Below are positions 4,701 through 63,530 of a stretch of DNA of 64,000 nucleotides, one piece after another. The stretch is from Setoptus koraiensis (Eukaryota > Animalia > Arthropoda). The translations under genes were made by a program, and so were the position numbers. Every line of letters starts with the position of its first letter. The first letter of the stretch is position 1. The stretch lies in NCBI GenBank assembly GCA_048013815.1, contig CM106586.1, forward strand, positions 4,464,001 through 4,528,000, in the 5' to 3' direction. The notes below the pieces were generated by a model. It did not search any database, was not told the origin of the DNA, and saw only the letters and a list, made by a program, of their open reading frames with translations.

Positions 4701-4823
4701 TCCGCGTCTGTCACACAGTCGGCGTGCAACGGCCGCGAGCACCGCGCCGAACGGTAATCGGTTAACAAGCAGCAACAAGTTGCCTGTGCCGTTTCTGGCT
4801 ACCTCACCTCAACAGGTATCCTC

Positions 4824-4863
4824 GGCTCACCTGAGTAGGCTCACCTGAGCCGGCTCACCTGAG
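4824..4863. promoter_or_regulatory. Three GGCTCACCTGAG (CAGGTG E-box / 5'-splice-like) copies at 14-nt period
   Basis: Copies at 4824, 4838 and 4852; function inferred only. Confidence 0.35.
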
Positions 4864-6962
4864 CAGTATCGGCCGCTGCAATATCAATAATAATGATAAT
4901 AATAATAATAAATGGCCAATGCAAATGCGTCGCGTCGTGCCACCACCCGCATCTTTTGTCTTCTTCGGCCATCATCATCATCGCTCTTCTCTACGTGATA
5001 TCCCGTCGCTATGTCTCACTGGCAGTGATATCCAGCGTCCGAGCGCCAATCACGTCACCAATCATCGGCGCGCGATTATCGGTTTGCGCTACCTGGTCGA
5101 CGGTCGCCCGCGCCAGATTGTTATTGCGGGCCGCCGGCCAATACCGTTATTGGCCACTTGCCACTGGCGGTCATTGCGGAGTTGTCGACTCGACAGTTAT
5201 CGAGAGTTATTTGGAGTTATTTAGAGAGAGCTCCCAGCAACTCTCCACAACTCGGCAATGACCGCCAGTGGCGGCCTAAATATGAAATATGATCCGCGCC
5301 GTCAAATCGCCATACCGTCCCGTATGCGTACGGTCAGTTTGCAATTACCGGCCGCGGCCGCCAGATTAACGTTGTGCCGCTCCAAACCCGCAAACCCGAG
5401 AGCCTCGCGAACGTTCAATCGCACGCGCGACAAAACAGCGCCGCGATCTACTGACCTGCATCATCGGCGCTCGCCGTTGTTGATCGGCGCTCGCCGTTGT
5501 TAATCGACGCTCGCCCTCGTTAATTGACGCCCGCCGGTGCCCAGTTGGCCTCGAGCGGCTCGAGCCGAGCCGCGGCTGTCGCGCCGACCCGCGCGCACTT
5601 GTCGTGCCCGACACCGGTGTACCTGTGGGCACAACATGCCGGGCCATTGACCCGGTCGGCGCTCTGTTTACCGCTCACCTGTTCACACTTTGTCCGCTCC
5701 TGTCCGCGCTTGCCCGTGTCTGCCCGCGCTTGTCCGTGTCTGTCCACTTCTGTCCGCTCTCGCCCGCGTCTGCCCGCTTTGCCCACTCGGAGCTCTCTGC
5801 TACAGACTCCCTAGCGGCGAGTGGCCGCAAACGCCGAGCGCAATGTTGCGCAACAGCTCGATCACATCGCGAGTCGCGACCAATTGAGTCGGCGAGAGAC
5901 GCGATAGTGCGCGTTACGCAACAGCCCATGCGGCAAACAATTGTTGTTTGCGGGGCGAATTAATTCATTTTTTGTGCGTTTGATTGTTTGCTTTTGGCAG
6001 CGACACCAGCAACAAATGAACTGTGAGCCAACAAACTGGTCGCTCGATCTGTCAAATTCACGCTCTCGTTGGCTCGTTCAAATTGTCAACTCACTCGACC
6101 GACTCGAATTCTGCCAACTCTCGTCGCTTGTGTGTCGCATTACAAAGTGATTAAAATGATGACAACACGACGTATGACCATACAAGCGAAATTAAATTGA
6201 ATTTTGCTTTTGAATGCTGCGCTGTCATGTCATTCCGCTCAATCATATTATGGCGTGCGCCTCGCCATTTATCCGGCCACGGTCACGATCATGCAAACAA
6301 GTGACATTGGGCACAACAGCAACAAATGTTGTGATGCAATATTATCAGATCAGATTAGATGGCCAGTCTGTCGCGCACCGTGTTGTTTGTCCGCAACATT
6401 TGGCGCAACATTTGGCGCAACATTTGGCGCAACATTTGGCGCAACATTGTGTGCCAAATTTTGGCGATGCCGAAACGAAGCGTGATTGAGCGTTATTTCG
6501 TCATAATCACTTGGTTGCTGTTTCGTCGGCCCCTAACCGACACACCACACAGAGATAATAACTGACAGCAGTAATTGACTGACTCGAATAGACTCGCAAA
6601 TGATACGAGCCACTGCCCGTCGAAGTGCAGACGTGCTCGCATTGTGTGCACGCCAACTTTGCGCAACTTGCGCAACTTGCGCAACTTACGCAACAAGTGT
6701 CAAGACCTGTTGTTTGCTCAATGATTGCGTCATTTATGTCAGCACTACTATAGTCAGCATGTTTATGTTACGCTAGCTTGCCAACACCAGCGCTCGCTTA
6801 TGCGCTCTCGCCCGCTGACCAAGTGAACGGTGTGCGAATAGGCAATTGTCGGTGCAAAGTGCCATTTGCGAGTGCCACTTTAGAGGGCGACAACAATGGC
6901 GAGACGTCAACGGTTCGCTTGTTGTCAACACTGGCCAGAGCCGGCACCAATTATGCGTGCCC

Positions 6963-46836: not shown

Positions 46837-48477
46837 ATGGCAAGCCTCAAGGCAGCGAGACTATGCTCTCTGTTTAGTCAGACACGTCGGATTTCAAGTC
46901 AATGTCATTGTCGTATACACTCGATGGCCTGTAGTAATCACAGTAATATATTATCTAGACAAATATCTGCATCGTCTATACACAACCATCTCCCTAGCAG
47001 CAAACTACATTACTATGAGAATAGGTCACGCTGGAATATTATCAAACGAACACTGTCGTCGTCTAGCGGCGAAATCAAAAGTGTCACTGTACCTCAATTG
47101 GCCGAATCACTCAGCGAGGGCGACCTCAAATGGGACAAGGGTATGTAGTGCATCGGCAAGACACAACAAAAACAATACGCAACAACCCTATTCAATCATA
47201 CGCATAGGTGACCTCTATTCGTTTTTTACCCTTTCTCATGTATCTAACATTCACTGAAATCATTCAATTGCAACAATGAAGCCGTTGGTGATACTGTTAG
47301 CGCCGACGAAGTCATTGGCTGTGTGGAAACTGATAAAACATCTGTGCCAATACATTCGCCAGTAGCTGGAGTCATTACGGAAATGTTAGCAGAGGACGGA
47401 GAGACTGTGAAGCCAGGTCAGGTTATTCTTAAAGTTCAGGTAGGCGAAGGCGCTGCCGGTAGCACTAGTACTGAACCGTCTGCCGCTCAGGCGACAACGC
47501 CCTCACCAACAACACCAACGCCGACACCAGACACAACAGCAACTCAACAAACTCAAGGAAAACAGACAGTTGGTCAGCAATCTATTGATTCTACACCAAA
47601 ATCTACGATACCTGTTAGTCAGGTTAGATCTGAGCTTGCTCAAACCCTGTCCAGCAATGAGCAAACATTTGGCGCCTCAAGAACAGTTAATCAAGTCAAA
47701 ATGAATAGAATGAGACTTAAGATTGCCTCCAGACTGAAGGAAGCACAGAATACCTATGCTATGTTAACAACATTCAATGAAATTGATATGAGCAATCTAA
47801 TTGAAATGAGACTCAAGTATAAGGACGCATTCACCAAAAAGCACTCAGTCAAGCTAGGATTTATGTCAGCATTTGTCAAAGCAAGTGCCTATGCACTAAA
47901 AGATCAACCTGTTGTTAATGCTGTTATTGATGCGAACCAAATATTATATAGAGATTACATTGATATTAGCGTTGCTGTTGCAACACCAAAGGGTTTAGTT
48001 GTACCAGTTCTACGTAATGTTGGTACAATGAACTTCGCTGATATTGAGAAAAATATCAACGCCTTGGGAGAGAAAGCTCGAAATAATTCACTATCCGTGG
48101 AAGATATGGATGGAGGTACATTTACAATTAGCAATGGAGGTGTGTTCGGATCATTGTTTGGTACCCCAATTATTAATTCACCTCAGTCAGCAATTCTTGG
48201 AATGCACGCTATTAATGACAAGCCTGCTGCTGTCAATGGAGAGGTACAGTCCAAAAGAACTCTAACTTGTTAGATCGTAGTGTGATATTTGCATCGATAT
48301 AATATCAAGCTCTAATATTCTTATTTTCTCATTATTACTCAGGTCAAAATACGCCCTATCATGGTAGTAGCTTTAACGTATGATCATCGCCTGATTGATG
48401 GAAGGGAAGCGGTGACATTCTTGAAAAAAATCAAAGAGGTCATTGAGGATCCCCGAGTGATACTTTTAGATCTTTAG
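46837..48477 (+). CDS. DLST: Mitochondrial dihydrolipoyllysine-residue succinyltransferase (OGDH E2), 3 exons (46837-47140, 47282-48243, 48343-48477), 466 aa
   Basis: Arg/Ser-rich presequence; lipoyl motif VETDKT; catalytic core [44 protein letters not shown]; GT-AG introns keep frame. Confidence 0.97.
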
Positions 48478-48680
48478 ACAGTACGCAACACAATAATTAT
48501 TAACAATGACACATTTGCACACTTAGGTCTTACCTTACTTACTAGTCTATTCAGATAGGCAGGAATACATAAAACGCTAGATACTAACGAAACTTATATC
48601 TGTCACCTCTGCAATACGTCTGAGACAGAGTTTTCAACACTGTAGTTTACTAGCGGTCGAAGATTACACAATAATTCTGA

Positions 48681-49862
48681 TTATATGGGACATTGTGGTC
48701 GAATTCTACCTCGCGTAGTCATATTGTTTTGCATTCCTGTTCTGAGAACTATCTTGTTCTTGAATTTGTTGAATCTCTTTAAGTCGTTAGCGAATGTTAC
48801 AGCAGCTCTACCAGTCAAGCCTGTCCACTTGAGATTATTCTTAACATTTGCCGTAGAGCCATCTTTGTCCTGATGCAATAGGGCTCCTGGACGGAACTTG
48901 ATACTTCTTCTGACAGTTCCGCGATTATTGGTATATTCGATTGCTCTGTTCAAGTCGTAGGGTCCACTGGCCTGAGTTGGGGCCAAACGTTGCTTATAGT
49001 ATTTGAATAGACTCCGATGGCCGATCGACTTGCCTGCTCGAGGGAGGTGCATTTGCCAACTGTCATCAATCCACATTTCTCTCGAATCAATGTCCTCCCC
49101 ATCCGATGATGAGCTACCATCCTTAGATTTTATTTCTTTATCTGGATAATTGTCAGAGTAGTCATAAAAGTCAGCGTATTCCGCAACGGCTTGTTCTTGA
49201 TCGTAACGTATCTTACAATGGTCTTTGTATAACATATGCAATCTAACCCCATGTAAGGATCGGAACTGTTTATTACACCATAGACATGTATTGCCCGCAC
49301 CAACCTTGAAACCTAGATACTCTATCAAGCCATCTATATCATCGAGATATCTTTCTTCTGGTATAAAGAATCCGTGGACGTACATGTGGTTGACGTTTTC
49401 CATCACAGTGGGGCTCTGCTTGGCGCAAAACAAACAGGTATCTGGTCTTACAACATTTTTCATCATTCTTTTTGTTTCTTCTGGATCCTCTTCGTCTTCC
49501 AATGCATCGAAGTCTTCGTCGTCTGTTTCCCATTCATCACTGTCGATTTCTTCTTCTTCCTTAAGGTTCTCCGCGGTGCTTTCTAGTTCATCTAGCTTCT
49601 CTTGTTTAGAATAGAGATCGGAAAAATCTTCGGGATTGAGTTTTTTGGAGTTTGCTCGCTTCTCTTTCGGAGTTTCTTGTTTCGGATTGTTTCGCTGCAG
49701 TTCCTTAAGATCATTGAAGGAATTCAGATCTATGGGATCGAGGCTACAGACGCGACGTTTGATATTATAAAGATGCCACTCTGTTTTGAAGTGTTCTCTC
49801 TGCAGTGAGCCATTCTCAAATTTCAGCCTGCATCCCATACATGTAAATTTAGGATTCGACAT
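48681..49862 (-). CDS. ZNF622: Cytoplasmic 60S biogenesis zinc-finger protein (ZNF622/Rei1), 393 aa
   Basis: N-terminal C-x2-C...QREHFKTEWHLYNIKRRV; CLFC...HGFFIPEERYLDD; CLWCNKQFRSLHGVRLHMLYKDHC; IGHRSLFKYYKQ. Confidence 0.95.
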   Translation of the reverse strand: MSNPKFTCMGCRLKFENGSLQREHFKTEWHLYNIKRRVCSLDPIDLNSFNDLKELQRNNPKQETPKEKRANSKKLNPEDFSDLYSKQEKLDELESTAENLKEEEEIDSDEWETDDEDFDALEDEEDPEETKRMMKNVVRPDTCLFCAKQSPTVMENVNHMYVHGFFIPEERYLDDIDGLIEYLGFKVGAGNTCLWCNKQFRSLHGVRLHMLYKDHCKIRYDQEQAVAEYADFYDYSDNYPDKEIKSKDGSSSSDGEDIDSREMWIDDSWQMHLPRAGKSIGHRSLFKYYKQRLAPTQASGPYDLNRAIEYTNNRGTVRRSIKFRPGALLHQDKDGSTANVKNNLKWTGLTGRAAVTFANDLKRFNKFKNKIVLRTGMQNNMTTRGRIRPQCPI

Positions 49863-50277: not shown

Positions 50278-50922
50278 ATGCCGAAAGTAGTATCGAGAAG
50301 TATAGTTTGCGCTGACGTTAGGAGTAATGTACGTGACGAGAAACCTCTCAATGTTTATTATTGCTGGTGCGGACAGATAGGTCTAATATTAGATTGCAAG
50401 ATACACAATCTTCCATTGAGGGAACGGGACAACTCGCGTATTATTGATAAGAAAAAACATCTAGCCGTGAGTTTCCCTTGTTTGGATCAGAAGAAAACTA
50501 TCAAGGATGATGCTATTACATACGTAAAATGGAAGGATGGCGTTGAGAAACAGTATAGACTCAAATGCAAAAGGTGTAACTTATTCACATTCTACAAGCA
50601 CTCGAGAGACTCGGAAATTATATTTGTCGTTAACAAGGCCATGAACATCAAGCCTGCAAATTCAATTTTCGGTGGAGGAAGAGGAAATTCATCTAACTAC
50701 GATTCCGGCAAGAATAATGCACCATCTACCTCTAATGCTGTCAAGAAATTCGAGAAAAATTCTCAGGGTAGAAACTCAAATGTAACAATTTCGACCTTGG
50801 ACGAAGATGAGGCCGAACTAGAGGCCAAAGTGATAGAACAATCTTATGAGGAGAATGCTAGCATCGTGCAAAGAGAACTCGAACGCCAGGCAGCTAAAAA
50901 GCGCAGGATGGAGGATTACTGA
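50278..50922 (+). CDS. STEEP1: STING ER exit protein / CXorf56 (UPF0428) homolog, 214 aa
   Basis: MPKVVSRSIVC...PLNVYYCWCGQ..LILDC..LPLR..D.SR; G.EKQYRLKCKRC.L; C-terminal TLDEDE.E.EAK.IEQSY..NA..V..EL.R; AATAAA near 50950. Confidence 0.92.
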   Translation: MPKVVSRSIVCADVRSNVRDEKPLNVYYCWCGQIGLILDCKIHNLPLRERDNSRIIDKKKHLAVSFPCLDQKKTIKDDAITYVKWKDGVEKQYRLKCKRCNLFTFYKHSRDSEIIFVVNKAMNIKPANSIFGGGRGNSSNYDSGKNNAPSTSNAVKKFEKNSQGRNSNVTISTLDEDEAELEAKVIEQSYEENASIVQRELERQAAKKRRMEDY

Positions 50923-51002
50923 TCTTGCGATCAGTTGTATAGTGTATTATAATAAATTAGTATCAGCACTTCGGTTGATACTGCTCTTGCAGTAGATGAG
51001 TG

Positions 51003-51161
51003 ATTGATGGCCGCCGTGTCAGCTTATTGCCAAGATCTGAGTCATTCACCTATGATCTTGATCTCTTGTTTGTGCTCGTTAGTGCTCAGTAAACTTTCAA
51101 TGGATGCCAATAGTTCGTCTTGGCCACATCTGAATGCATTTAATCTTGTCTCTTTTTCAAA
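51003..51161 (-). pseudogene. UDP-glycosyltransferase C-terminal relic (spider-mite/bacterial type)
   Basis: EKETRLNAFRCGQDELLASIESLLSTNEHKQEIKIIGE*LRSWQ*ADTAAIN resembles the RLNP..C..EELL.AIEKLL...L...I..R.QS C-terminus of cytosolic mite UGTs; two stops. Confidence 0.65.
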
Positions 51162-51296
51162 CTAATGCTGAAGACAGCAGCATGGAGCAAAGGAATGAAT
51201 TTAAACTATGCAAATTACAAATTTGCTACAACGATAATTTTACTTGTATATCATATGAATCAGTCGCAATACAAATATTCATCAATATACACCAAT

Positions 51297-52301
51297 CTAA
51301 CTCCAAGGTAATACAACAAAAGAGTGGTTACCCTTACAATCAGGGTCATCATAGGGACATCGCCTCCTCCGCTCTTCTCTCTTTCTAGCTTCTTCCAACT
51401 CCCTCTCTCTGGCCTCTTCTTTCATCTTGGCTTCTAACCACTGCCTCCTCCTGGCCTCTTCCAGTTCGTACTTCTTTTTGATTGGTTGCAACTTATCTAA
51501 CTCTTCCACCATTTTGTTTTTATCCACTGTCAGCTTGTTAATCTCTTTTATTTGAGAATCCTTGATTATCTCGCACGTAGTCAAACTACGTTTGGTTTCC
51601 GCCAATTGATTACCGCATTCGTGCATAGTAGCCACTTGTTTCTCAAATGTAGCCAATTTTGACTCGTACGAATTTCTCATTTCATTTTGACGATCGGCAC
51701 TCTCCGTTTTGATAGAGCACAATCCTTGCTTCAAATCGCTCAACTCTTTGTCTTTTTGCTTCAATTTATCCTCTGCATCCTTCGAGATAGTAGATAGAGA
51801 GGAAATCAATTTATTCTTTAATTCCATTTCTTTGTCAATCTTATTCAAATCTTTCTGTAAAGTGGAAATTTCCTGCTCATATTGACCAGTCACAGACAGC
51901 GCTTTTTCTAATTGTCCAGCTAAGTTTTCACTTTTAGAGCGTTCCTTGTCCAACAACTCTTGCAGTTCTCTGAGTGAATTATGCTCGTTTCCAAGTCCAT
52001 CTTGCGGTGAAATTACATCCAAAGTTCCTCTTGGTTCCCTTTCATTTCCAATTTCAGCCGCAGCAACAATTTCGGGAGCCGTTGCTACACTTTTCGGACG
52101 TTCTTTGAAAGAGTTCATTTCATCGTTGCCCTTCAGTTTCTCGAAGTATCCAACCAACGAGCTCACTTTTGCCAAGTTACCTCGTTCTTGATTAGATCCA
52201 AGCACAACATGGTTTTCAGGTTTTGCAGATGTCACACGAAATATGATAGAAAGCAGAATGAACACTGTTGACAAAAATCTAACATCTTGTTGTCGAATCA
52301 T
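51297..52301 (-). CDS. Secreted coiled-coil protein, type A copy A1, 334 aa
   Basis: Signal peptide MIRQQDVRFLSTVFILLSIIFRVTSA|KP; KVSSLVGYFE motif; heptad coiled coil; E/R/K-rich tail then CPYDDPDC. Confidence 0.85.
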   Translation of the reverse strand: MIRQQDVRFLSTVFILLSIIFRVTSAKPENHVVLGSNQERGNLAKVSSLVGYFEKLKGNDEMNSFKERPKSVATAPEIVAAAEIGNEREPRGTLDVISPQDGLGNEHNSLRELQELLDKERSKSENLAGQLEKALSVTGQYEQEISTLQKDLNKIDKEMELKNKLISSLSTISKDAEDKLKQKDKELSDLKQGLCSIKTESADRQNEMRNSYESKLATFEKQVATMHECGNQLAETKRSLTTCEIIKDSQIKEINKLTVDKNKMVEELDKLQPIKKKYELEEARRRQWLEAKMKEEARERELEEARKREERRRRCPYDDPDCKGNHSFVVLPWS

Positions 52302-52887
52302 CGTCAGCCGTTCAACCAGATATCAAATACCAAATCTTGACAGTTTTTTAGGAAATCACCTAAACTTATATTTCAGCTATTAAAAATGATGATAATATCA
52401 GCATTTCAACATTCACATTTGTTATGGTGGTCTAGAAACAATGGATAATAATGATAACATAATATCCATGGAAGGTAAAAACTCTATAAATAGAATCGGA
52501 TCATGCAATATGGATGACGAACTGGGGATTATTTTTGGTCAATCGAAGTTTGAAGCTAGACCAGCGATGGAAATCACACGCAATCACAAGAGCGTTGAAG
52601 AGTTTGTCTACAGATTTTGCATCTTCATTGGAGAGACTGCAATCAAATGTCGGTCGTAGCCGGTTCGGCCGTATCTTCTACCTGCTAGACATGACGAAAT
52701 GAAGTTGCGACCTTCTTCCAGAAAGATGGAATCTGAGAATTTATCTCAAAGGTATGGTCATTCTTACCGATATAGTAGTGCTTGTAATAGAGAAACAGGG
52801 GAGACATCCCGATTCGTGGCGATTTGCTTAATTTATTCCGCATTTTACTCGAAGAAGCTCAAGACTTTCGGCGCTACCTATACAAAC

Positions 52888-53284
52888 CTAAACAAAATCT
52901 AACTCTATCTCGAGTCTAAATACAATATTGTTTTTACCAATTGTCATCTTCTTAAGCTCTTTCATCATTCGGGAGTTTTTGATGGACTTGCCTGTATTCA
53001 GACTACGTTTTGTTTCCGCCAATTGAGTCCCATATTCGTACATCATGGCCGCTTGTTTCTCAAATATAGCTACTTTAGACTCATACGAATTTGTTTTCAT
53101 TTCGACGATCGGCACTTTCTGTTTGATAAGATGCAATCCTTTCTCCAAATCGATCAATTCTTTGTCTCGTCAATTCAATTTATTCTCTGATTCTTTTTAA
53201 CATACCAGATGAAAAGGAAATTAATTCATTCTCTTCTTTCATTTCTCCGTTAATTTTCAAATCTATCTACAAAGTAGAAATTTC
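52888..53284 (-). pseudogene. 3' half of a type A gene (A3-like relic) fused under the end of B1
   Basis: EISTL*IDLK..EMKEENELISF../ESENKLN*RDKELIDLEKGLHLIKQKVPIVEMKTNSYESK...ELDFV*; nearly identical to 58078-58470. Confidence 0.85.
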
Positions 53285-54398
53285 TTAGGAAGGTCAACTC
53301 TTTTACGTCTCGTGCCATCTCGTCCTCCATTTTTTTGCTCATTTCTTGCAAATCTCTCAAATCTTTTTCCATCGAGGAAAGTTTTTTATCATACTCAGTA
53401 GATAAGGTTTTGACGAAAATTTCGTGTGTCTTCGCACAGTCTTTGGCCTCTATCCGCAAAGAATTCAACGTTTCTTGTGTTTGCCTTAAATTCTCTTTTA
53501 ATTGTTCTTTTATGGCTTCGATTTCTTGTAGCCTAGACGACGCATCTTCCAACTGTTTTAGCAAGTTTACGTTCTCTTCACGCTCGTTATCCAGAGCTTT
53601 TTGCAACTCTTTGGAAGACTCGCCAGTCTCCTTGCCGTCCCTGAGCGACATCTCTCTCAACTGTTTCAGCGCGTTTCTGTTCTCAGCTCTCTCGTCCTGT
53701 AGCAATCTCTGTACTTCTTTGAGAAACCTCTCTGTTTCTTTTGCCTTTTCGTTCGTCACTGTCAATTCTTCTAATTGCTTTTTCAAATTATTGTTTTCTG
53801 TTTGCTCATTATGCAGTACTTCTTGCAACTCTTTGAGTGTCTTTTGAGTTTCTGTATCCTTCATTGACATCGCACTTAATTTTTCAATCAAGTTTTTATT
53901 CTCTGCTCGCTCTATTTCTAGTAATTCTTCCACTTCATCTAGCGATCTCTGGGTCTCTTTCAATTTTCTATTTTTCTGTGACAGTTGGAGCGAGTTTTGG
54001 GCCTCTGTTTCTTGTTGCCCCAGGAATTCGTGTTCTCGTCGCTTGTCGATAGCTATCGATAGCCTAGTCTTCTCATCACAATCTACCGCCTTGTCTTCTT
54101 TAAGTTGGTTGTATTTTGACTTTGTCCTTGCTTCTCTATCTCGGTGGGCATCGGAAGAATATTTGACAGATTTAGCGGGACTATTCCTTGGGAGTTCTAA
54201 TGAAGATTTCCGCCTTCCGTTAGTTCCAAAATTTTCAAAATGCCTTACCAGCGAACTTACTTTAACTATGTCCTCTCGGTCCAGAGTGGGCTTCTCTGTT
54301 GCTTTAGCGACCTCTGCCAAGGCCACCAGTAGTATGAGAGGATTGACCAGAATGCATACGAGCGATAATAAAGTGGCATTTTGATGAAGCGCAGCCAT
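53250..54398 (-). CDS. Secreted repeat coiled-coil protein, type B copy B1, 382 aa
   Basis: Signal peptide MAALHQNATLLSLVCILVNPLILLVALA|EV; KVSSLVRHFE; ~35-38-aa L.E.Q..L.NER.EN.NL.KQL repeats. Confidence 0.85.
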   Translation of the reverse strand: MAALHQNATLLSLVCILVNPLILLVALAEVAKATEKPTLDREDIVKVSSLVRHFENFGTNGRRKSSLELPRNSPAKSVKYSSDAHRDREARTKSKYNQLKEDKAVDCDEKTRLSIAIDKRREHEFLGQQETEAQNSLQLSQKNRKLKETQRSLDEVEELLEIERAENKNLIEKLSAMSMKDTETQKTLKELQEVLHNEQTENNNLKKQLEELTVTNEKAKETERFLKEVQRLLQDERAENRNALKQLREMSLRDGKETGESSKELQKALDNEREENVNLLKQLEDASSRLQEIEAIKEQLKENLRQTQETLNSLRIEAKDCAKTHEIFVKTLSTEYDKKLSSMEKDLRDLQEMSKKMEDEMARDVKELTFLRNFYFVDRFEN

Positions 54399-55290
54399 AA
54401 TTTCTGCTTTTGATTGAGTGTCCGCGACCGACTATTGAGTCAGTTATCCGGCGATACTATCTCATGGTTTTTTTTTATAGGAAATGCATACAGAAGAAAA
54501 TTCATGAAAACAATCAAAAGATCAACTTCCTATTAATAATTTGTACGTCATTTTATCACTTGACAACGCAGGTCACTCGTATTCGCTATGGAATCAGCCT
54601 ACTAATAACGCTCTAACTTAATGCTGCAATTTGTCAATTAGCAATCGTTAGCTTTGAGTTGTGCTGATTTCCGGCCAAAGTGATTACCGAGCATTGATAT
54701 CATTAATCATCATTCGTTGGCCTGCCCGTAATTTCGAAATATCATTCATCCAGTTTGACAAAATCATCGACTTTACCTATACTCACTCTGAAGATGAAAA
54801 GAGAATTTCACTTTCTAGATGATTAGACCAGTAAACTAAAAGGTTGCCTAGGCTATGGAGTTCAGTTCAATTCAAGTGTTGATTGGATATGTACGAACGA
54901 TGTTCGACCTAGAAAGTTGTTGCCAAAGTAAAACTATTTGATAGTATCTTGTAGAGACCAAATTAGTCACAGTGATGATGCGACAGATTTGTGCTCACAA
55001 ACATTGTTGAAAATATCCTCTGTGAGCTGCGCTAACAAGCGAAAAGGCCTCGTACAAAAAAAAACTAGAACTTTCTGGAACCACAGACTGTATATGTCTG
55101 ATGAATGGCTAACCAGAATCTAGACTAAAATATGCAACAATAACCAGCTATTGGTGTAAAGATAGATTTTTTTATCTAGCAGATGATATGAATCATTGAC
55201 GATATAGCATGGATGATATGATTTTTGTTGCACAACTCGTGAGTACTATGTAAACTAAATCCAGACATCATAACAAACAGTTTGGTACAT

Positions 55291-55445
55291 CTAATATTAG
55301 ATACAGAATCTTGCATTGGGGGAGAAGGACAACTCGCGTATTATCGATAAGAAAAAACAGTATAGACTCAAATGCAAAAGGTGTAACTTATTCACATTCT
55401 ACTAGCACTCGAGAGACTCTGAATTATATTTTTCGTTAGCGAGGC
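55291..55445 (+). pseudogene. STEEP1: STEEP1 internal fragment
   Basis: Matches 50383-50640 with 8-nt and 93-nt deletions and AAG>TAG. Confidence 0.9.
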
Positions 55446-55571
55446 TTTGTTTCGTGTGATTCCAAAATGGGCTCTGGCGTAGTTTCAATCTTTTCTCCTA
55501 ACCCTTTGACAATGCGAGCCGCTAGAATCCCTAGTAACTAGGGCCTAGTTGCACTTGCCATTCCCCAACCA

Positions 55572-55800
55572 CTAGCCATATATATGGTTGGTCAAAAGAT
55601 CTTCGATTTCGACGGCCGCCATGTCTGCTAATTTCGAAGATCTAAGTCTTTCACCTATGATCCTGATCTTTTGTTTGAGCTCGTTAGTGTCTCCACTCTC
55701 TACTGTGCCAAGTGAAAAATATATCAGTCTGCCTGGTTTGTTCTGCAATCTATCAGGTGTATCTCAAGGTGTGTCTTCCTTTCTCACCAATTGGTCGCAT
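55572..55800 (-). pseudogene. UDP-glycosyltransferase relic (middle and C-terminal pieces joined by a deletion)
   Basis: MRPIGEK.../LEI-PDRLQNKPGRLIYFSLGTVESGD|TNELKQKIRIIGERLRSSKLADMAAVEIEDLLTNHIYG*. P..L..KPG.LIYFS.G is typical of mite UGTs. The weaker DDVELTSMDNFSSQ at ~55880-55920 may also belong. Confidence 0.72.
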
Positions 55801-56122
55801 TCAATACGCATTTATCAATACTAGCAAGACTACGAATTTATTGTCTGTTTGTTCGGTTTAATTATGTAGTAAATGATCTGAGATGAAAAGTTGTCCATCG
55901 ACGTCAATTCTACATCATCGATTGCCCATTCAATCGAAAGGCTGGTATTATGCAATGCAAAGAGAGACAAACAATGAATGTTTGTCGGAGAAAACCAAAT
56001 TGGCGAGAAAAAACATTGCACAAAGAGCTGTATCGATGTTTGGGATCATAGAAGCTTGATATGAACAACTGATCGGATTGTTAAAAGTGCTATCTGACCA
56101 AATAATCAGCAAATGTAATTTT

Positions 56123-57430
56123 TCAAAATCGAAAGAATGGATCAGATATCACAGGAAATTGTTGATATCCCCAATACTGCTGCTGATCTCGTGAGTGGTC
56201 AACCTGACAATTTGGATCACCATAAGGGCAAGGTGGCCGTCTCCTTTGCTGCTCTCTCCTGTTGGCTTCTTCATACGCCTTCCTTCTAGCATCTTCTTTC
56301 CTTTTGGCTTCTTCCAACTCCCTCTTTTGGGCCTCTTCTTTCCTCTTGGCTTCTTCCAACTCCTCCCTCTTTCTTGCCTCTTCCAATTCGTACTTCTTTT
56401 TGATTGGTTGCAACTTATCTAACTCTTCCGCCATTTCGTTTCTATCCATTGTCAGCTTGTTTATCTCTTTTGCTTGAGAATCCTTGATTACCTCGCAAGT
56501 ACTCAAACTGCGTTTGGTTTCCGCCAATTGATTACCGCACTCGTGCATCATGGCCACTTGTTTCTCAAATGTAGCCAATTTTGACTCGTACGAATTTCTC
56601 ATTTCATTTTGACGATCGGCACTCTCCGTTTTGATAGAGCACAATCCTTGCTTCAAATCGCTCAACTCTTTGTCTTTTTGCTTCAATTTATTCTCTGCAT
56701 CCTTTAAGATAGTAGATAGAGAGGAAATCAATTTATTCTTTACTTCCATTTCTTTGTCAATCTTATTCAAATCTTTCTGTAAAATGGAAATTTCCTGCTC
56801 GTATTGACTTCTTACAGATTTTAGTTGATTTTCGTGACTTTGTTTAGCATCATGCATGTCCTTGAGCGATGCACTCAATTCTTCTCTCGTTTGGTCGAAA
56901 CTTTCTTTCAGCTGTTCATGAGCGGCCTCAGATTTTTGTCTGCCAGACAACGCTTCTTCTAATTGTCCCGCTAATTTTTCACTCTTTGAGCGTTCCTTGT
57001 CTAACATTTCTTGCAATTCTGTGAGTGAATTTTGTCTTACAGCATCTCTCGCCTCCAAAGAATCTAGTTCTCGTTGTTTCCTGTCCAGAGCATCAGTAAG
57101 AACAATAATACTTTCGTCATCTCCGGCCTCGTTGGCAGACCCATCATGCGGTGAAATTACATCCGAAGTTCCTCTTGATTCCCTTTCATTTCCAATTTCA
57201 TCCGCAGCAACAATTTCGGGAGCCGTTGCTTCACTTTTCGGACGTTCTTTGAAAGAGTTCATTTCATCGTTACCCTTCAGTTTCTCGAAGTATCCAACCA
57301 ACGAGCTCACTTTTGCCAAATTACCTCGTTCTTCATTAGATCCAGCAGGCTTTGCAGATGTTACATGAAATATGATAGAAAGCAGAATAAACACTGTTGA
57401 CAAAAATCTAACATCTTGTTGTCGAATCAT
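56123..57430 (-). CDS. Secreted coiled-coil protein, type A copy A2, 435 aa (longest A form)
   Basis: Signal peptide nearly identical to A1; KVSSLVGYFE; two extra in-frame coiled-coil blocks; ELEEAKRKEE repeats; CPYGDPNC; Q/aromatic tail. Confidence 0.87.
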   Translation of the reverse strand: MIRQQDVRFLSTVFILLSIIFHVTSAKPAGSNEERGNLAKVSSLVGYFEKLKGNDEMNSFKERPKSEATAPEIVAADEIGNERESRGTSDVISPHDGSANEAGDDESIIVLTDALDRKQRELDSLEARDAVRQNSLTELQEMLDKERSKSEKLAGQLEEALSGRQKSEAAHEQLKESFDQTREELSASLKDMHDAKQSHENQLKSVRSQYEQEISILQKDLNKIDKEMEVKNKLISSLSTILKDAENKLKQKDKELSDLKQGLCSIKTESADRQNEMRNSYESKLATFEKQVAMMHECGNQLAETKRSLSTCEVIKDSQAKEINKLTMDRNEMAEELDKLQPIKKKYELEEARKREELEEAKRKEEAQKRELEEAKRKEDARRKAYEEANRREQQRRRPPCPYGDPNCQVDHSRDQQQYWGYQQFPVISDPFFRF

Positions 57431-58077
57431 CGTCAGCCGTTCAACCAGATATCAAATACCAAATCTTGACAGTTTTTTAGGAAATCACCCAAACTTATAT
57501 TTCAGCAATTAAAAACAATGATAATAATATCAGCATTTCAACATTCACATTTGTTATGGTGGTCTAGAAACAATGGATAATAATGATAACATAATATCCA
57601 TGGAAGGTAAAAACTCTATAAATAGAATCGGATCATGCAATATGGATGACGAACTGGGGATTATTTTTGGTCAATCGAAGTTTGAAGCTAGACTAGAGAT
57701 GCCAATCGAAGGTTCAGTGAATTTTCGCATGGGCAGAAATGGCTCAAAAGAGGGTAAAAGAGTTTGTCTATAGATTTTGCACCGCAAGTTTCTGTCGCTG
57801 CCGGTTCGGCCGTATCTTTTACCTGCTAGACATGACGAAATAAAGTTGCGACCCTCTTCCAGGAAGATATGACGGTGCACCGTAATACAAAGGAACCTAG
57901 TCGATTCTTATCATTGAAATCTGAGAATTTCTCCGAAAGAGGTATACTCATTCTTAGAGATATATCAATGCTTGTAATAGAGAGACAGGGGAGACATCTC
58001 GATTTGTGGCGATTTGCTTAATTTATTCCGCATTTTACTCAAAGAAGCTCAAGACTTTTGGCGCTACCTATACAAAC

Positions 58078-58891
58078 CTAAACAAAATCTAACTCTATCT
58101 CGAGTCTAAATACAATATTGTTTTTACCAATTGTCATCTTCTTAAGCTCTTTCATCATTCGGGAGTTTTTGATGGCGTTGCCCGTACTCAGACTACGTTT
58201 TGTTTCCGCCAATTGAGCCACTTATTCGCACATCATGGCCGCTTGTTTCTCAAATATAGCTACTTTAGACTCATACGAATTTGTTTTCATTTCGACGATC
58301 GGCACTTTCAGTTTGATAAGATGCAATCCTTTCTCCAAATCGCTCAATTCTTCATCTCTCCACCTCAATTCACTCTCGCATTCCTTTCACCATAGCGGAT
58401 AAAAAGGAAATTAACTCATTCTTTTCTTTCATTTCTTTTTCAATCCTATTCAAATCTCTCCGTAAAGTGGAAATTTCCTGCTCATATTGGCCAGCTAATT
58501 TCTTACTCTTTAAGCGTTCCTTCTCCAACAACTCTTGCAGTTCTCTGAATGAATTCCGTTCGCTTCCATATCCATCTTGCGGTGAAAGTACATCCGAAGT
58601 TCCTCTTGGTTCTCTTTCATTCCCATCTGCATCAGCGGAACCAATTTCAGGAGCCGTTGGTTCTCTTTGTTCACTTTTCGGAAGTTCGTTGAGAGATTTA
58701 AGCCCAGCTTTGCCGCCCAGTTTCTCGAAATATCCAACCAACGAGCTCACTTTTGCCAAATTACCTCGTTCTTCATTAGATCCAAGCACAACATGGTTAT
58801 CAGGCTTTGCAGATGTAGCTTGAAATATGATAGAATGCAAAATAAACACTGTTGACAAAAATCTAACAACTTGTTGTCGAATCATCGTCAT
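58078..58891 (-). pseudogene. Type A copy A3, frameshifted
   Basis: Intact signal and N-half (173-aa ORF); +1 A near 58386 (GTG AAA GGA vs AAG GAA); TAA at 58222-24 in the restored frame. Confidence 0.85.
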
Positions 58892-59460
58892 CCGTTCAAT
58901 CAGATATCAAATACCAAATCTTGACAGTTTTCTAGGAAATCACCTAAACTTATATTTCAGCAATCAAAAATACTAATAATAATATCAACATTTCAGCGTT
59001 CACATTTGATATGGTGGTCCAGAAATGGATAATAATGTTAACATAATATCCATAGAAGGTCAAGACTCTATAAATAGATCCAGATCATGCACTATGAAAT
59101 TGGGATTATTTTTGGTCAATCGAAGTTTGAAATGACTAGTGATGGAAATCGATATCGAAATTCCAATGAATTTTCGCATGAGCAGAAAATCAAGATTATC
59201 CCAAGAGCGTGGAAGAATTTGCCGGCAGATTTTGCATCTTCGCTTGAGATGCTGCCATTAATTGTCAGTCATCGTCTGTTCGGTCGAATCTTTCACCCGA
59301 TAGAAATGGCGAAATAAAGTTGTGACTTCTTGTCAGAGATATAAGCCGGTGAACCATAATACTAAAGCATTAAGTCTATTCGTTTCAACGAAATCTGAGA
59401 ATTTCTCTACGAGAATCAGTGCTTGTAATGGAGAGGCAGGGCAAGCATCTCGATTTGTGG

Positions 59461-59629
59461 TTCTGTATATATAGAGGGCAAATCTTTCTCCAAATCGCTC
59501 AATTCTTTGTCTCTTCGCCTCAATTTATTCTCTGATTCCTCTTAACATAGCAGATAACGAGGTAATTAATTAATTCTTTCCTTTCATTTCTTTGTTAATG
59601 TTCAAATCTATCTACAGAGTAGAAATTTC
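59461..59629 (-). pseudogene. Short type A relic under the end of B2
   Basis: EISTL*IDLNINKEMKGKN*LITSLSAML/EESENKLRRRDKELSDLEKDL, then truncated. Confidence 0.8.
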
Positions 59630-60911
59630 TTAAGAAGCTCAATTCCTCTTCTTTTCGTGCCATTGCGTTCTCCATTTTTTTGCTCATTTCACTCAAATCT
59701 TTCTCCATAGAGGACAGTTTTTGATCATATTGACTAGATAAAGTTTTGATGACAACTTCGTGCGTCCTCTTGAAGTCGCTGGACTCTATTCGCAAAGAAT
59801 TCAACGTTTCTTGTGTTTGCCTTAAATTCTCTTTTAATTGTTCTTTTGTGGCTTCGATTTCTTGTAGCCTAGACGACGCATCTTCCAACTGTTTTAGCAA
59901 GTTTACGTTCTCTTCACGCTCGTTATCCAGAGCTTTTTGCAACTCTTTGAAAGACTCGCCTGTCTCCTTGTCGTCCCTGAGCGACATCTCTCTCAACTGC
60001 TTCAGCATATTTCTGTTCTCAGCCCTCTCGTTTTGTAGCAATCGTTGTACTTCTTTGAGAAACCTCTCTGTTTCTTTTGCCTTTTCGTTCGTCACTGTCA
60101 ATTCTTCTAATTGCTTTTTCAAATTATTGTTTTCTGTTTGCTCATTATGCAGTACTTCTTGCAACTCTTTGAGTGTCTTTTGAGTTTCTGTATCCTTCAT
60201 TGACATCTCTCTTAATTTTTCAATCAAGTTTTGATTCTCTGTTCGCTCGTTATCGAGACCTTTTTGTATCGCTCTCAGAGCGCTCTCAAAGTCACTTTTT
60301 TCTTTGAGAGACATCTCTCTCAAATGTTTCAGCGTGTTTACATTCTCTGCTCGCTCTATTTCTAGTATTTCTTTCACTTCATCTAGAGATCTCTGAGTCT
60401 CTTTCAATTTTTCATTCTTCTGTGATATTTCTTCTAACTGCTCGGCCAATTTTTTATTCTGCATTCGCTCATTTTCCAGTAACTTTTGTGACAACTGGAG
60501 CGAGTTTTGCGCCTCTGTTTCTTGTTGCCTCAGAAATTCTAGTTCCCGTCGCTTCTGGTCGATAGCTATCGACAGCCTAGTCATCTCATCATATTCTGCC
60601 GCCTTGTCTTCTTGAAGTTGGTTAAATTTCGACTTTGTTCTTGGCTCTCCATCTCGGTGGGCATCAGAAGAATTATCGATAGGTTTAGCTGGTCTATTCC
60701 TTGCCAGTTCTAGTGAAGATTTGTGCCCTCCGTTAGATCCAAAATTTTCAAAATGTTCAACCAGTGAACTTACTTTAATTATGTCCTCTCGGTCCAGAGT
60801 GGGCTTCTGTATCTCTCTATCGACCTCTGCCAAGGCCACCAATAGTATGAGGGGATTGAATAGAATGCATACAAAAGATAATGAAGCGGCATATCGATGG
60901 AGCGCGGCCAT
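59595..60911 (-). CDS. Secreted repeat coiled-coil protein, type B copy B2, 438 aa from the first ATG
   Basis: The ORF-track start (60956) is GTG; the ATG at 60911 aligns with B1 MAALH. KVSSLVEHFE; about six repeat units. Confidence 0.85.
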   Translation of the reverse strand: MAALHRYAASLSFVCILFNPLILLVALAEVDREIQKPTLDREDIIKVSSLVEHFENFGSNGGHKSSLELARNRPAKPIDNSSDAHRDGEPRTKSKFNQLQEDKAAEYDEMTRLSIAIDQKRRELEFLRQQETEAQNSLQLSQKLLENERMQNKKLAEQLEEISQKNEKLKETQRSLDEVKEILEIERAENVNTLKHLREMSLKEKSDFESALRAIQKGLDNERTENQNLIEKLREMSMKDTETQKTLKELQEVLHNEQTENNNLKKQLEELTVTNEKAKETERFLKEVQRLLQNERAENRNMLKQLREMSLRDDKETGESFKELQKALDNEREENVNLLKQLEDASSRLQEIEATKEQLKENLRQTQETLNSLRIESSDFKRTHEVVIKTLSSQYDQKLSSMEKDLSEMSKKMENAMARKEEELSFLRNFYSVDRFEH

Positions 60912-63530
60912 AATGTTCTGTAATGTTTTGTTGATTGAGTGTTCGCGACCGATCACCGAGTCATTTGTCCGCTGATACTGTCTGATTGTTTTTTTCGTTT
61001 AATAACATACCGAAGAAAAATCATGAAAACGATCAAAAGATCACCTTCCTCATAATAATACACATGTCACTATGTCACTTGATAACGCAGGTCACTCGCA
61101 TTCGCCATGGAATCAGCCTACTAATAACAGCGATCGAAATCTATAACCTAATGCCTTAATCTGTCACTTTGCAATCGTTAGCTTTGAGTTATGGTGATTT
61201 TTGGCTAAAGTGACTAAAGAGCACTGATATCATTAATCATCGTTCGTTGGCCTGCCCGTAATTTCGAAGCATCATTCATCTAGTTTGACAAAATCATCGA
61301 CTTTATCTATACTCACTTAGAAGATGAAAAGAGATTTTCACTTTCTAGATGATTGAACCATTAAATTAACAGGTCGCCTAGGCTGCGGAGTTCTGCTCAA
61401 TTCCTGTGTTGATTGGGTACTTCCAAAACTTATTTGGTTCGACCTAGAAACTTGTTGCCAAAGTAAAACTATCCGATGGTATATAATAGAAACACACTCA
61501 ATTTCACAATGATGATGCGACACATTTGTACACTCGAACATTGTTGTAAATATCCTCTGTGAGTTGCCGTGGCTAGCGAAATGGCCTCATACGAAAAAAT
61601 GAAATACTGTAGGAAAAAATATTTTTTTTTTCATCGGCATGAGTTTGTAAATATAAAAGAAAGTGGCGTCAGTAACAGTCACTGTCTGATGAATGACTAA
61701 CCAGAATCCAGACTAAAATGTGCAGCAATAACCAGCTATGGGTGTAAAGATAGAATTTGTTTGTCTGTCAGATGATATGAATCATTGACGATATAACATA
61801 GATGATATTTATTAATGTTACACAACTCGTGAGTAATATATAAACTAAATACAGACATCATGACAATAATAATTTTGTGTGTTATTTTTCTCATCGGAAG
61901 TGTGTGACAAAAAATCTCAATGTTTACACCTAGTACAGCTATATGAATGAATGCTGTCATAGTATTAGATAATAATAATTATATGGATTATTATTGATTG
62001 CCACAATAACATGTGTTTCCTTGATAACACATATCTAGTTTTTAATGTACTAAGGTATTAGATAGATTTTTCTGTAGCCTGCACGGTACAGTTATGGATA
62101 ATTGTTTCTCTAGACTGGTAATTGGTTTTGGCTGAATTAATAATTAATTAGTATGTATAAGTATGTACAAGGATTACAGTAGTGGTGAGATATAGTCTTC
62201 ATTGTGTGTGCATGATGGATAAGGAGATAAATATGCTGATATCAACATTGTGTTATATATATTACATTACAGTCATATCTGATTTAATGACGATTCTATA
62301 AATACACAGCGCGCGCGCGTAACAACAATCATCATCATCAATTGATGCGATAATTATGACCACTGCAATAGTCTTGATACTTTATCATAGATAGATAGAT
62401 GTGCTCTTTAATAATAGAAAATGGAATAGACTAATGATAATTATAGTCAATAATAGTAATAGTAATACAGTAATAATAATAGAGGCCTTCATGTTTTGTG
62501 TTCCATGTTCAATCATCGATTAGATTCTTGCTCGATTAATTCGTTAATTATATACGTGTGTGTAGGTTTTGTCCATTCTTTGCGTTTAAACAATTCAATG
62601 TGTCTCATCGAGTAGTTGGCCAGAAACATACACACGTTCGTTTGGAATGTGCCAGTTGGATTTGTTTGGAATGGCGGCCACTTTTGCAAGCTTTGGACCC
62701 CCCATTCAAGGCTACTAATTGCTACTTTCTCTCTTCTCTTGATCACTTATTTTCCCAATGAATACATGTGTTAATAAATTATTGGTGACGCTCCATTATT
62801 GGCTACTATCTTTGATAGGTATTCTCGTGGCGAGCTGAATGACAAAACTGACCGAACGAATGTAAACAAACAAAATGTTGTATGATAGTGACCACACGAA
62901 TTGTGTTTACGCTATGTGTTGCTCAATTTTGTTTTAACCGTTTTGTTGATTAGATAGACTCATCTTAATAATAGTTATTGCCGTTGTTGTTGTTGTTGTT
63001 GTTGTTGTTGTTGCTGGTCCAATTGATGATAATAATTGGTAAAATTATTGTATTTGGTTGCATTCACAATGCAGTAGACAAACAAACAGAGAAACAAGCA
63101 AACATTTACATTTACATACTACATAATCACACAGACAGATCTGATTGGCGCCGTCGCTATGCAAAGCAAGTCATTGAAAACTTTGAGTTAAATCTCAACG
63201 TGTCGCCCACTGGCGCCAATTCTGTCCATTTATCTGGATGATAACGCCACGCCAATGACGCAATAATGTCAATCAATCAATATGCCCACTTGATGTTGTG
63301 TGTTACGTTGCATTTACAATACAATAATCATTATTGTTACACAATAATCATCGTCATAATATTTATGATATGCGTGGCACGATAACAACAAACCCGGTTT
63401 GTTATTGCGATCATGATAGTTATTGTTGCTGGCATTGTTCTAATCAGCTATTGTAATAATGGTCAGTGCGAGTGCACATGACATGACAAGCAAGAAGGTA
63501 AATGGAAGCAAATAATAACATCAATCGCGT

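Follow-up and report, generated by a model that had tools for sequence, protein, structure and literature searches.

What kind of protein is encoded by the cluster of similar genes in a 64-kb stretch of the genome of the mite Setoptus koraiensis (assembly GCA_048013815.1, contig CM106586.1, positions 4,464,001 to 4,528,000; hereafter "the window"), and what might such a protein do? An earlier reading of the letters alone (the sequence-only reading) had described this cluster as four intact genes, A1, B1, A2 and B2, and three relics on one strand, and had proposed that they belong to an undescribed family of secreted coiled-coil proteins, possibly salivary effectors. The count was borne out by the list of open reading frames (ORFs), by tblastn and blastn comparisons and by reading out the frames: all four genes are intact, single-exon ORFs in the ORF list of the window, and the broken copies are a truncated A-type copy (A'), a fused A-type relic and a short A-type fragment. 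Family sequence is confined to 51.3-60.9 kb when the whole window is searched by tblastn with A2 and B2. We consider it likely that the genes of the cluster are real and probably transcribed, and that they specify a family of secreted coiled-coil rods restricted to its lineage. At present the family is an orphan that is well documented but has no assigned function.

Organization of the A and B proteins

Each of the intact proteins begins as a secreted protein would. The only 19-residue segment with a mean Kyte-Doolittle hydropathy above 1.6 falls at residues 6-16 in every one of them, and this N-terminal segment is the sole hydrophobic one in all eight proteins tested (six from the window and two encoded by ORFs on contig L001 of the related species discussed below). 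All 11 N-termini that are present on contigs open with a signal-peptide-like hydrophobic stretch. As read from the sequence, a basic n-region and a core of 13 residues precede a putative cleavage site between TSA and K in the A-type; in the B-type the core is 18 residues long and the putative site falls between ALA and E. With a hydrophobic segment at the N-terminus only and n-, h- and c-region features in all intact copies, the earlier claim of a signal peptide and no transmembrane segment holds as a prediction.

Were this segment left uncleaved, it would hold the protein within the secretory pathway or make it a type II membrane protein, with the rod in the lumen of the endoplasmic reticulum (ER) or Golgi, in the manner of GOLM1 and GPP130. 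Lumenal coiled-coil proteins of such topology exist, the B-type core is as long as 18 residues, and GOLM1 and GPP130 similarly have an N-terminal hydrophobic segment, behind which come a coiled coil in the lumen and a region that is acidic or disordered. An uncleaved anchor of the Golgi type II class would be expected to span about 20 residues or more, compared with cores of about 13 residues in the A-type and 18 in the B-type. Against an anchor, the A-type core is short, and in both types the core is followed by a canonical cleavage motif with small residues at -3 and -1. In addition, the C-termini of the family proteins carry no retention signal (neither KDEL nor HDEL), neither Pfam nor the exhaustive profile search described below reveals homology to such families, and housekeeping Golgi proteins are not usually so restricted in range or so fast-evolving. 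We therefore regard an anchored form as very unlikely.

Beyond the signal peptide, A2 continues with a leader helix and a disordered linker. Rods 1 and 2 come next, the second containing a pair of cysteines, and they lead to an E/R/K-rich helix, after which a basic cluster and a Cys loop precede the aromatic tail. Its AlphaFold2 model (mean predicted local distance difference test score, 69) has a helix at residues 38-52, over the leader motif, disorder at 53-106, helices at 107-267 and 274-397, and then a disordered tail; the model of B2 (mean score, 75) has a helix at 41-59, disorder at 60-103, and helices at 104-310 and 318-437. In the intact proteins the disordered linker is followed by about 290-300 residues of heptad-periodic helix. 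The 3.5-residue hydrophobic periodicity of the rods, scored on L, I, V, M, F and Y only, lies 7-13 standard deviations above composition-matched shuffles, of which none in 500 reached it; together with the modelled helices, this upholds the claim of a coiled coil. The rods would be ~40 nm long. Their chains contain 13-15% Glu, ~10% Lys, 9-14% Leu and 5.4-7.4% Ala.

Two sets of cysteines occur at fixed places. The pair in rod 2, 14 residues apart (C-x13-C), is common to the A-types and to the full-length B-types of the related species, and it marks the A-type window that is best conserved between the species (0.8 identical). At the C-terminus of the A-type, the E/R/K-rich helix leads to a [KR]RR cluster and directly from there to PPCPYGDPNCQV(D/N)H, in which the loop spacing is C-x6-C. 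Such an order might indicate a peptide precursor, in which a convertase would cut at the basic cluster and free a disulfide-looped tail, the rod being a pro-region. The stretch of cluster and loop is among the better conserved ones (0.6-0.7 identical between species in two 24-residue windows, vs. 55% for the whole protein), a point in favor of this reading. A 400-residue coiled-coil pro-region would nevertheless be unusual, the tails beyond the loop vary greatly in length and sequence, and B1 and B2, which lack the tail altogether, are still under constraint, and so we hold the precursor explanation to be highly improbable.

The two types differ in the make-up of their rods. A repeat module of ~36 residues, defined by the regular expression LKELQxxLxxERxENxNL, is matched four times in tandem within the rod of B2 and five times in each of two B-types of the related species, but only once each in A1, A2 and B1; in B1, further copies of the module diverge from the expression. 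Within a type, differences in length are in frame. A1 and A2 agree at 276 of 418 alignment columns (66%, gaps counted), and relative to A2, A1 has lost 93 nucleotides (nt), or 31 codons, at one place and 135 nt at another, where 6 nt stand instead. B1 and B2 are 72% identical, B1 being the shorter through two in-frame repeat-module gaps.

A and B are nonetheless evidently paralogues, forming one family with two types, as the sequence-only reading had argued from a shared block of residues. BLASTP with compositional adjustment aligns A2 with B2 at an E value of 1e-16, with 44% identity across that block (EQLKE...SQYxQ), and a second alignment opens at the signal peptide. KVSSLVxxFE, from the leader helix, is invariant in a five-sequence alignment. 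In a tree, the A and B sequences fall into separate clades with support of 100/99 each, and both species are represented in each clade. Since the related species has separate orthologues of the A-type and of the B-type, the split between A and B predates the two species.

Relatives in a second species

How widely is the family distributed? A word-indexed search with full-length A2 returned one relative, and the same search with the N-terminal 110 residues of A2 alone returned no match at E <= 10. When 1.84 billion representatives were searched exhaustively with a profile, 13 matches were obtained at E <= 0.001, seven of them at E <= 1e-10, and all seven come from a single Logan assembly, SRR33593474. 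The best of the six weaker matches, the catfish protein P0128, was rejected, as a simple LKQKEKELSDL repeat drives the match; the remaining five, at E 5e-5 to 4e-4, were left uninspected. SRR33593474 carries ZNF622 and the E2 acyltransferase (2-oxoacid dehydrogenase family) at 90% and 89% identity, respectively, and these two genes are convergent both in the window (47323-49862) and in the assembly (contig L006). Both the level of identity and the identical arrangement indicate that SRR33593474 represents a related species.

This species has eight family copies, four of each type. On its contig L002, an A copy lies directly upstream of a B copy, and a BTB-Kelch gene adjoins the pair. Three of its copies are incomplete: the A-type copy on L002 is cut off by the start of the contig, a copy on L001 frame-shifts shortly before its 3' end, and P0126 has an early stop. 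Across the two species, nine ORFs are intact and apparently complete. Copy number has evidently changed since these species split. Synteny was seen for ZNF622-E2 only; the neighbors of the family on L001, Rpb4 and a fragment of EMG1, have no match in the window. One B-type of the relative, P0122 (545 residues), retains rod 2 with its Cys pair, whereas B2 is without the second rod, and for this reason we read B1 and B2 as 3'-truncated derivatives that are still under constraint.

Among the matches inspected, none from outside these two species proved to be a homologue. In Pfam, the four intact proteins and six of the relatives remain far below the gathering cutoffs, the scores being 18 vs. 33 for Laminin_II, 19 vs. 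33 for DUF745 and 21 vs. 30 for SlyX, and the families of group 5 and 21 mite allergens, which are secreted helical bundles, gave no match at E <= 1. A match of the 173-residue relic ORF of A' to the Mga helix-turn-helix domain (21.3 vs. a cutoff of 21.1; E 4e-4) was taken as a chance helical match. Among structures, the best profile match of the PDB was a designed spike helical bundle (E 4.5e-5), which we took as compositional because no stretch of it passes alone; a Foldseek search of the PDB with the A2 model gave nothing at E <= 0.001, and the ESM Atlas returned for A2 only generic coiled coils (best, 0.79). The Tetranychus urticae proteome is part of the collection searched, being the source of the best named match to ZNF622 (33% identity), and ~60 Logan proteins are closer to ZNF622 than that match; no T. 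urticae protein is found among the named profile matches to the family. The ZNF622 match makes a mite origin plausible, and we take the animal to be an acariform mite, probably an eriophyoid. Nor did we find a description of such proteins in the literature on eriophyoid or other mites. The orphan status that had been proposed is thus supported in that no Pfam, PDB, Atlas or named homologue was found, and the profile search places real relatives in one other assembly only. The family appears to be undescribed but of a known general sort, that is, lineage-specific secreted proteins encoded in tandem arrays.

Constraint and rate of change

Long coiled-coil sequence tolerates change, and one might ask whether the ORFs look like genes for that reason alone, being in fact decaying or non-functional. 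The array does hold three broken copies, both B1 and B2 are 3'-truncated, and one copy of the relative frame-shifts near its 3' end. The ratio of nonsynonymous to synonymous divergence (dN/dS) is, however, 0.34 for A1/A2 and 0.35 for B1/B2, and between orthologues it is 0.15-0.36, values that are rough because dS is saturated; all are well below 1. The signal peptide, the leader motif and the cysteines have moreover been kept across copies in which dN reaches 0.3-0.44, and the coverage pattern described below suggests transcripts. We find decay barely credible, and consider it reasonably established that the genes of the family are real and under constraint, and that they have a secretory architecture and long coiled-coil rods.

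The constraint is accompanied by rapid divergence. Orthologues of the two species are 55-63% identical, with a dN of 0.23-0.31, which is four to six times the baseline of 0.055 given by the syntenic ZNF622 and E2 genes. As the mean dN/dS is below 1, there is no signal of an arms race at the level of the whole gene.

Read coverage of the array

Coverage by sequencing runs was compared across the array. In runs X2 and X3, which were read as DNA, coverage is even across genes and spacers. Runs X6 and X7, which bear the label of another organism, cover at a depth of 2-8 both A2 and A', each with 3' flank (~220 nt in the case of A2), as well as parts of B2; their coverage is empty at 57470-57863, at 59046-59439 and everywhere upstream of B2. 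Contig ends fall 18 nt upstream of the A2 ATG in X6 and 21 nt upstream of the A' ATG in X7. As one X6 contig shows the exact 135-nt skip that is specific to A1, together with its six replacement letters, it derives from A1. No canonical splice joints were seen inside the ORFs. The limitation of X6 and X7 coverage to the ORFs and short flanks suggests transcription.

The truncated copy A' is apparently transcribed as well. Its N-terminal ORF (58370-58891) encodes 173 residues comprising a signal peptide, the leader motif, the linker and a short first rod, beyond which the similarity continues in a different frame with stops. A 902-nt contig of X7 (58011-58912) consists of this ORF, 21 nt upstream of it and ~360 nt downstream. 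A' may be a pseudogene that is still transcribed, or else a shortened form with a function.

Origin of the array

The array arose by tandem duplication of a unit of ~5-6.5 kb containing part of STEEP1, A, A' and B. A blastn comparison of the window with itself pairs 50399-51084 with 55299-55689, 51373-53284 with 56292-58477, and 53133-55276 with 59478-61866, which delimits two units, the second of them the fuller (Table 1). The dS values of the two gene pairs, 0.234 for A1/A2 and 0.242 for B1/B2, are equal in effect, consistent with a single duplication event. Unit I is without ~1 kb that lies between two 155-bp repeats (58323-58477 and 59478-59629), and the loss of this segment fused the remainder of A' to the fragment at the 3' end of B. 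Together, the difference in copy number between the two species, the relics, and the in-frame gains and losses of modules agree with the tandem birth-and-death that had been suggested for this locus.

The segmental duplication carried along part of the housekeeping gene STEEP1, the copy of which then decayed: fragments of 50399-50639 and 51006-51084 recur at 55299-55445 and 55611-55689, respectively, with 86-93% identity.

Possible functions

We propose the following model. A cleavable signal peptide would carry each chain into the ER, leaving a protein that begins with the amphipathic leader helix [KR]V[SN][ST]LVxxFE and a disordered linker of ~50 residues. The two long heptad rods, with about 290 helical residues, would pair as dimers or higher oligomers, and the rod-2 Cys pair and the A-type C-x6-C loop would probably form disulfides in the secretory pathway. 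The B-type may have come from an A-like ancestor through amplification of the ~36-residue module of rod 1; that of the S. koraiensis genome would also have lost rod 2 through rearrangement, and the A-A'-B unit, with part of STEEP1, would have been duplicated in tandem. The product would most likely be exported from a gland and act outside the cell as an oligomeric rod.

Several points weigh against this model. Cleavage is predicted from n-, h- and c-region features only, and the 18-residue core of the B-type could act as a signal anchor. The oligomeric state and the disulfides are likewise predictions, the structure models being monomeric, and the composition fits a soluble charged rod, unlike that of known fibrous silks. 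The records of X6 and X7 do not state what kind of run they are; "RNA" is read from a coverage pattern at a low depth of 2-8, which carries no tissue information.

The sequence-only reading had taken secretion, orphan status and birth-and-death as fitting host-manipulating effectors or a secreted structural material. Those features are present, but for an effector they are not distinctive, since they are common to the structural and reproductive secretions of arthropods: a protein that is secreted, evolves fast and undergoes tandem birth-and-death could as well belong to a structural or reproductive secretion. A salivary effector would be made in the salivary glands, injected into the epidermal cells of the plant, and alter host defence or development there. 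A signal peptide without a transmembrane segment, orphan status, tandem duplication with relics and a dN four to six times that of the neighboring genes would all suit such a protein, and the mite is probably an obligate plant feeder. More speculatively, the basic clusters in the A-type tails could be nuclear localization signals. Orphan secreted proteins are also abundant in the genome of Aculops lycopersici, for which 612 secreted proteins are predicted, over half of which fall outside any orthogroup shared with other species (PMC7738191), indicating that orphan secreted genes are common in such genomes. The same study, the first eriophyoid genome paper, states that neither the effectors of eriophyoids nor their mode of host manipulation are known (PMC7738191). 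Each of these features, however, is also common in reproductive and structural secretions, no evidence from tissue or saliva places the proteins in the glands, and the whole-gene dN/dS is 0.15-0.36 rather than above 1. In addition, rods of ~40 nm with conserved termini and cysteines resemble assembling scaffolds more than they do typical small effectors. A host-directed salivary effector is, in our view, possible but rather unlikely.

Our weak lean is toward a rod that assembles outside the cell over an effector that acts in host cells, because (i) the ends are conserved while the rod is variable, (ii) the cysteines are conserved, (iii) A and B are adjacent in both species, and (iv) rod length changes by whole modules. 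We tentatively suggest that the proteins form a scaffold or material outside the cell, for instance a salivary deposit or a spermatophore, egg or attachment secretion, although we would give this less than an even chance. What probability remains falls to an internal extracellular role or to a role inside the secretory pathway.

Comparison with known systems

In gene organization and protein design, the closest analogue is provided by the coiled-coil silk fibroins of aculeate Hymenoptera (AmelF1-4 in the honeybee). These too are single-exon paralogues kept together in a small tandem cluster, with signal peptides and fast divergence, and their 30-50 kDa chains likewise form one long coiled coil between non-helical termini. 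Unlike bee silk, the A/B family lacks an alanine-rich a/d core, Ala amounting to only 5.4-7.4%; its chains are highly charged, bear conserved cysteines and carry a leader motif that silks do not have. No named arthropod protein, and so none of the AmelF type, is among the 13 profile matches at E <= 0.001, of which the five weak ones already mentioned were not inspected.

Fibrinogen-type coiled coils are also secreted rods of paralogous chains with cysteines at defined points of the helix. The A and B chains differ from them in having C-x13-C and C-x6-C in place of CxxxC disulfide rings, and no C-terminal fibrinogen globular domain appears in the models; Fib_alpha (PF08702) was matched by the relic ORF only, at E 0.097 and 13 bits vs. 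a cutoff of 29.9. The salivary families of mites and insects, such as the SHOT and Tetranin types of Tetranychus and the SSGPs of the Hessian fly, are comparable in their orphan status, signal peptides, tandem birth and death, and rapid divergence. Those families, unlike A/B, have been defined by expression in salivary glands or presence in saliva, and their proteins are mostly small rather than long coiled coils.

Major crop pests and gall inducers are found among the eriophyoid mites, and no function is known for any protein that they secrete. If the A and B proteins formed a secreted material, they would be another independent arthropod invention of an extracellular coiled-coil protein; if they were effectors, they would be the first effector family for eriophyoids. 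Landmarks for the design of probes are offered by the leader motif, the two rods, the conserved Cys pair and the conserved C-terminal loop.

The leader motif

The leader motif [KR]V[SN][ST]LVxxFE forms a conserved amphipathic helix ~15-20 residues past the predicted cleavage site. A similar sequence, RVNNLVKFFE, was observed in the relative at ~20 residues past the predicted cleavage site of a 677-residue orphan ORF with a signal peptide (L001:2406-4439, + strand). It is located 560 bp upstream of an A-type copy, and the remainder of its product is unrelated, with internal repeats of ~45 residues. It has no Pfam match, no Atlas match (best, 0.65) and no homologue in the window. As BLASTP gave no alignment between its N-terminus and that of the A-type, the link between the two comes down to the 10-residue match to the regular expression, for which ~7e-4 chance matches are expected over all translated frames searched, by a rough estimate. 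The motif, widened to [KR]V[SN][STN]LVxxFE, might be a transferable leader for a set of the lineage's secreted proteins, either a granule-sorting signal of one gland or a host-uptake motif like the RxLR of oomycetes; we think this quite unlikely.

Features of the array and its surroundings

The positions of the family members, the duplicated units and STEEP1 are given in Table 1. The length of B2 is counted from the ATG at 60911, which is equivalent to the start of B1, whereas the ORF as listed opens at an upstream GTG (60956). The fused A-type relic carries stops and frame changes, and abuts and overlaps the 3' end of B1. The frames of B1 and B2 each enter an A-type fragment out of register for ~14 codons and then stop. 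A TATA-like ATATAAG lies ~65 nt upstream of the A2 ATG. The genes had also been singled out as intronless; they are indeed single ORFs, but this carries little weight, because STEEP1 and ZNF622, the housekeeping genes next to the array, likewise consist of one ORF each.

Table 1. Features of the A/B array and adjoining sequence (positions in the window)
Feature	Position	Strand	Basis
A1, intact A-type gene, 334 aa	51297-52301	-	ORF list
B1, intact B-type gene, 382 aa	53250-54398	-	ORF list
A2, intact A-type gene, 435 aa	56123-57430	-	ORF list
B2, intact B-type gene, 438 aa from ATG	59595-60911	-	ORF list, start aligned with B1
A', truncated A-type copy	58099-58891	-	tblastn, frame read-out
Fused A-type relic, ~A2 residues 213-338	52909-53284	-	tblastn, frame read-out, blastn
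160-bp A-type fragment, overlaps B2 stop	59471-59629	-	tblastn, blastn, frame read-out
Duplication unit I: part of STEEP1, A1, fused relic, B1, B upstream region	50399-55276		blastn self-comparison
Duplication unit II (fuller): STEEP1 fragment, A2, A', A-fragment, B2, B upstream region	55299-61866		blastn self-comparison
Decayed STEEP1 copy fragments, tandem-duplication junction	55299-55689	+	blastn self-comparison
STEEP1, intact neighbor gene	50278-50922	+	Pfam STEEP1, E 1.5e-29

Short + strand ORFs with a common beginning occur upstream of A1, A2 and A' (52441-52659, 57573-57773 and 59087-59317, respectively). Because they lie inside the duplicated spacers and diverge after ~40 codons, they are most likely merely conserved upstream sequence of the A copies. 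Apart from the array, positions 2001-6000 of the window have a GC content of 56-59%, compared with 37-50% elsewhere in the window.

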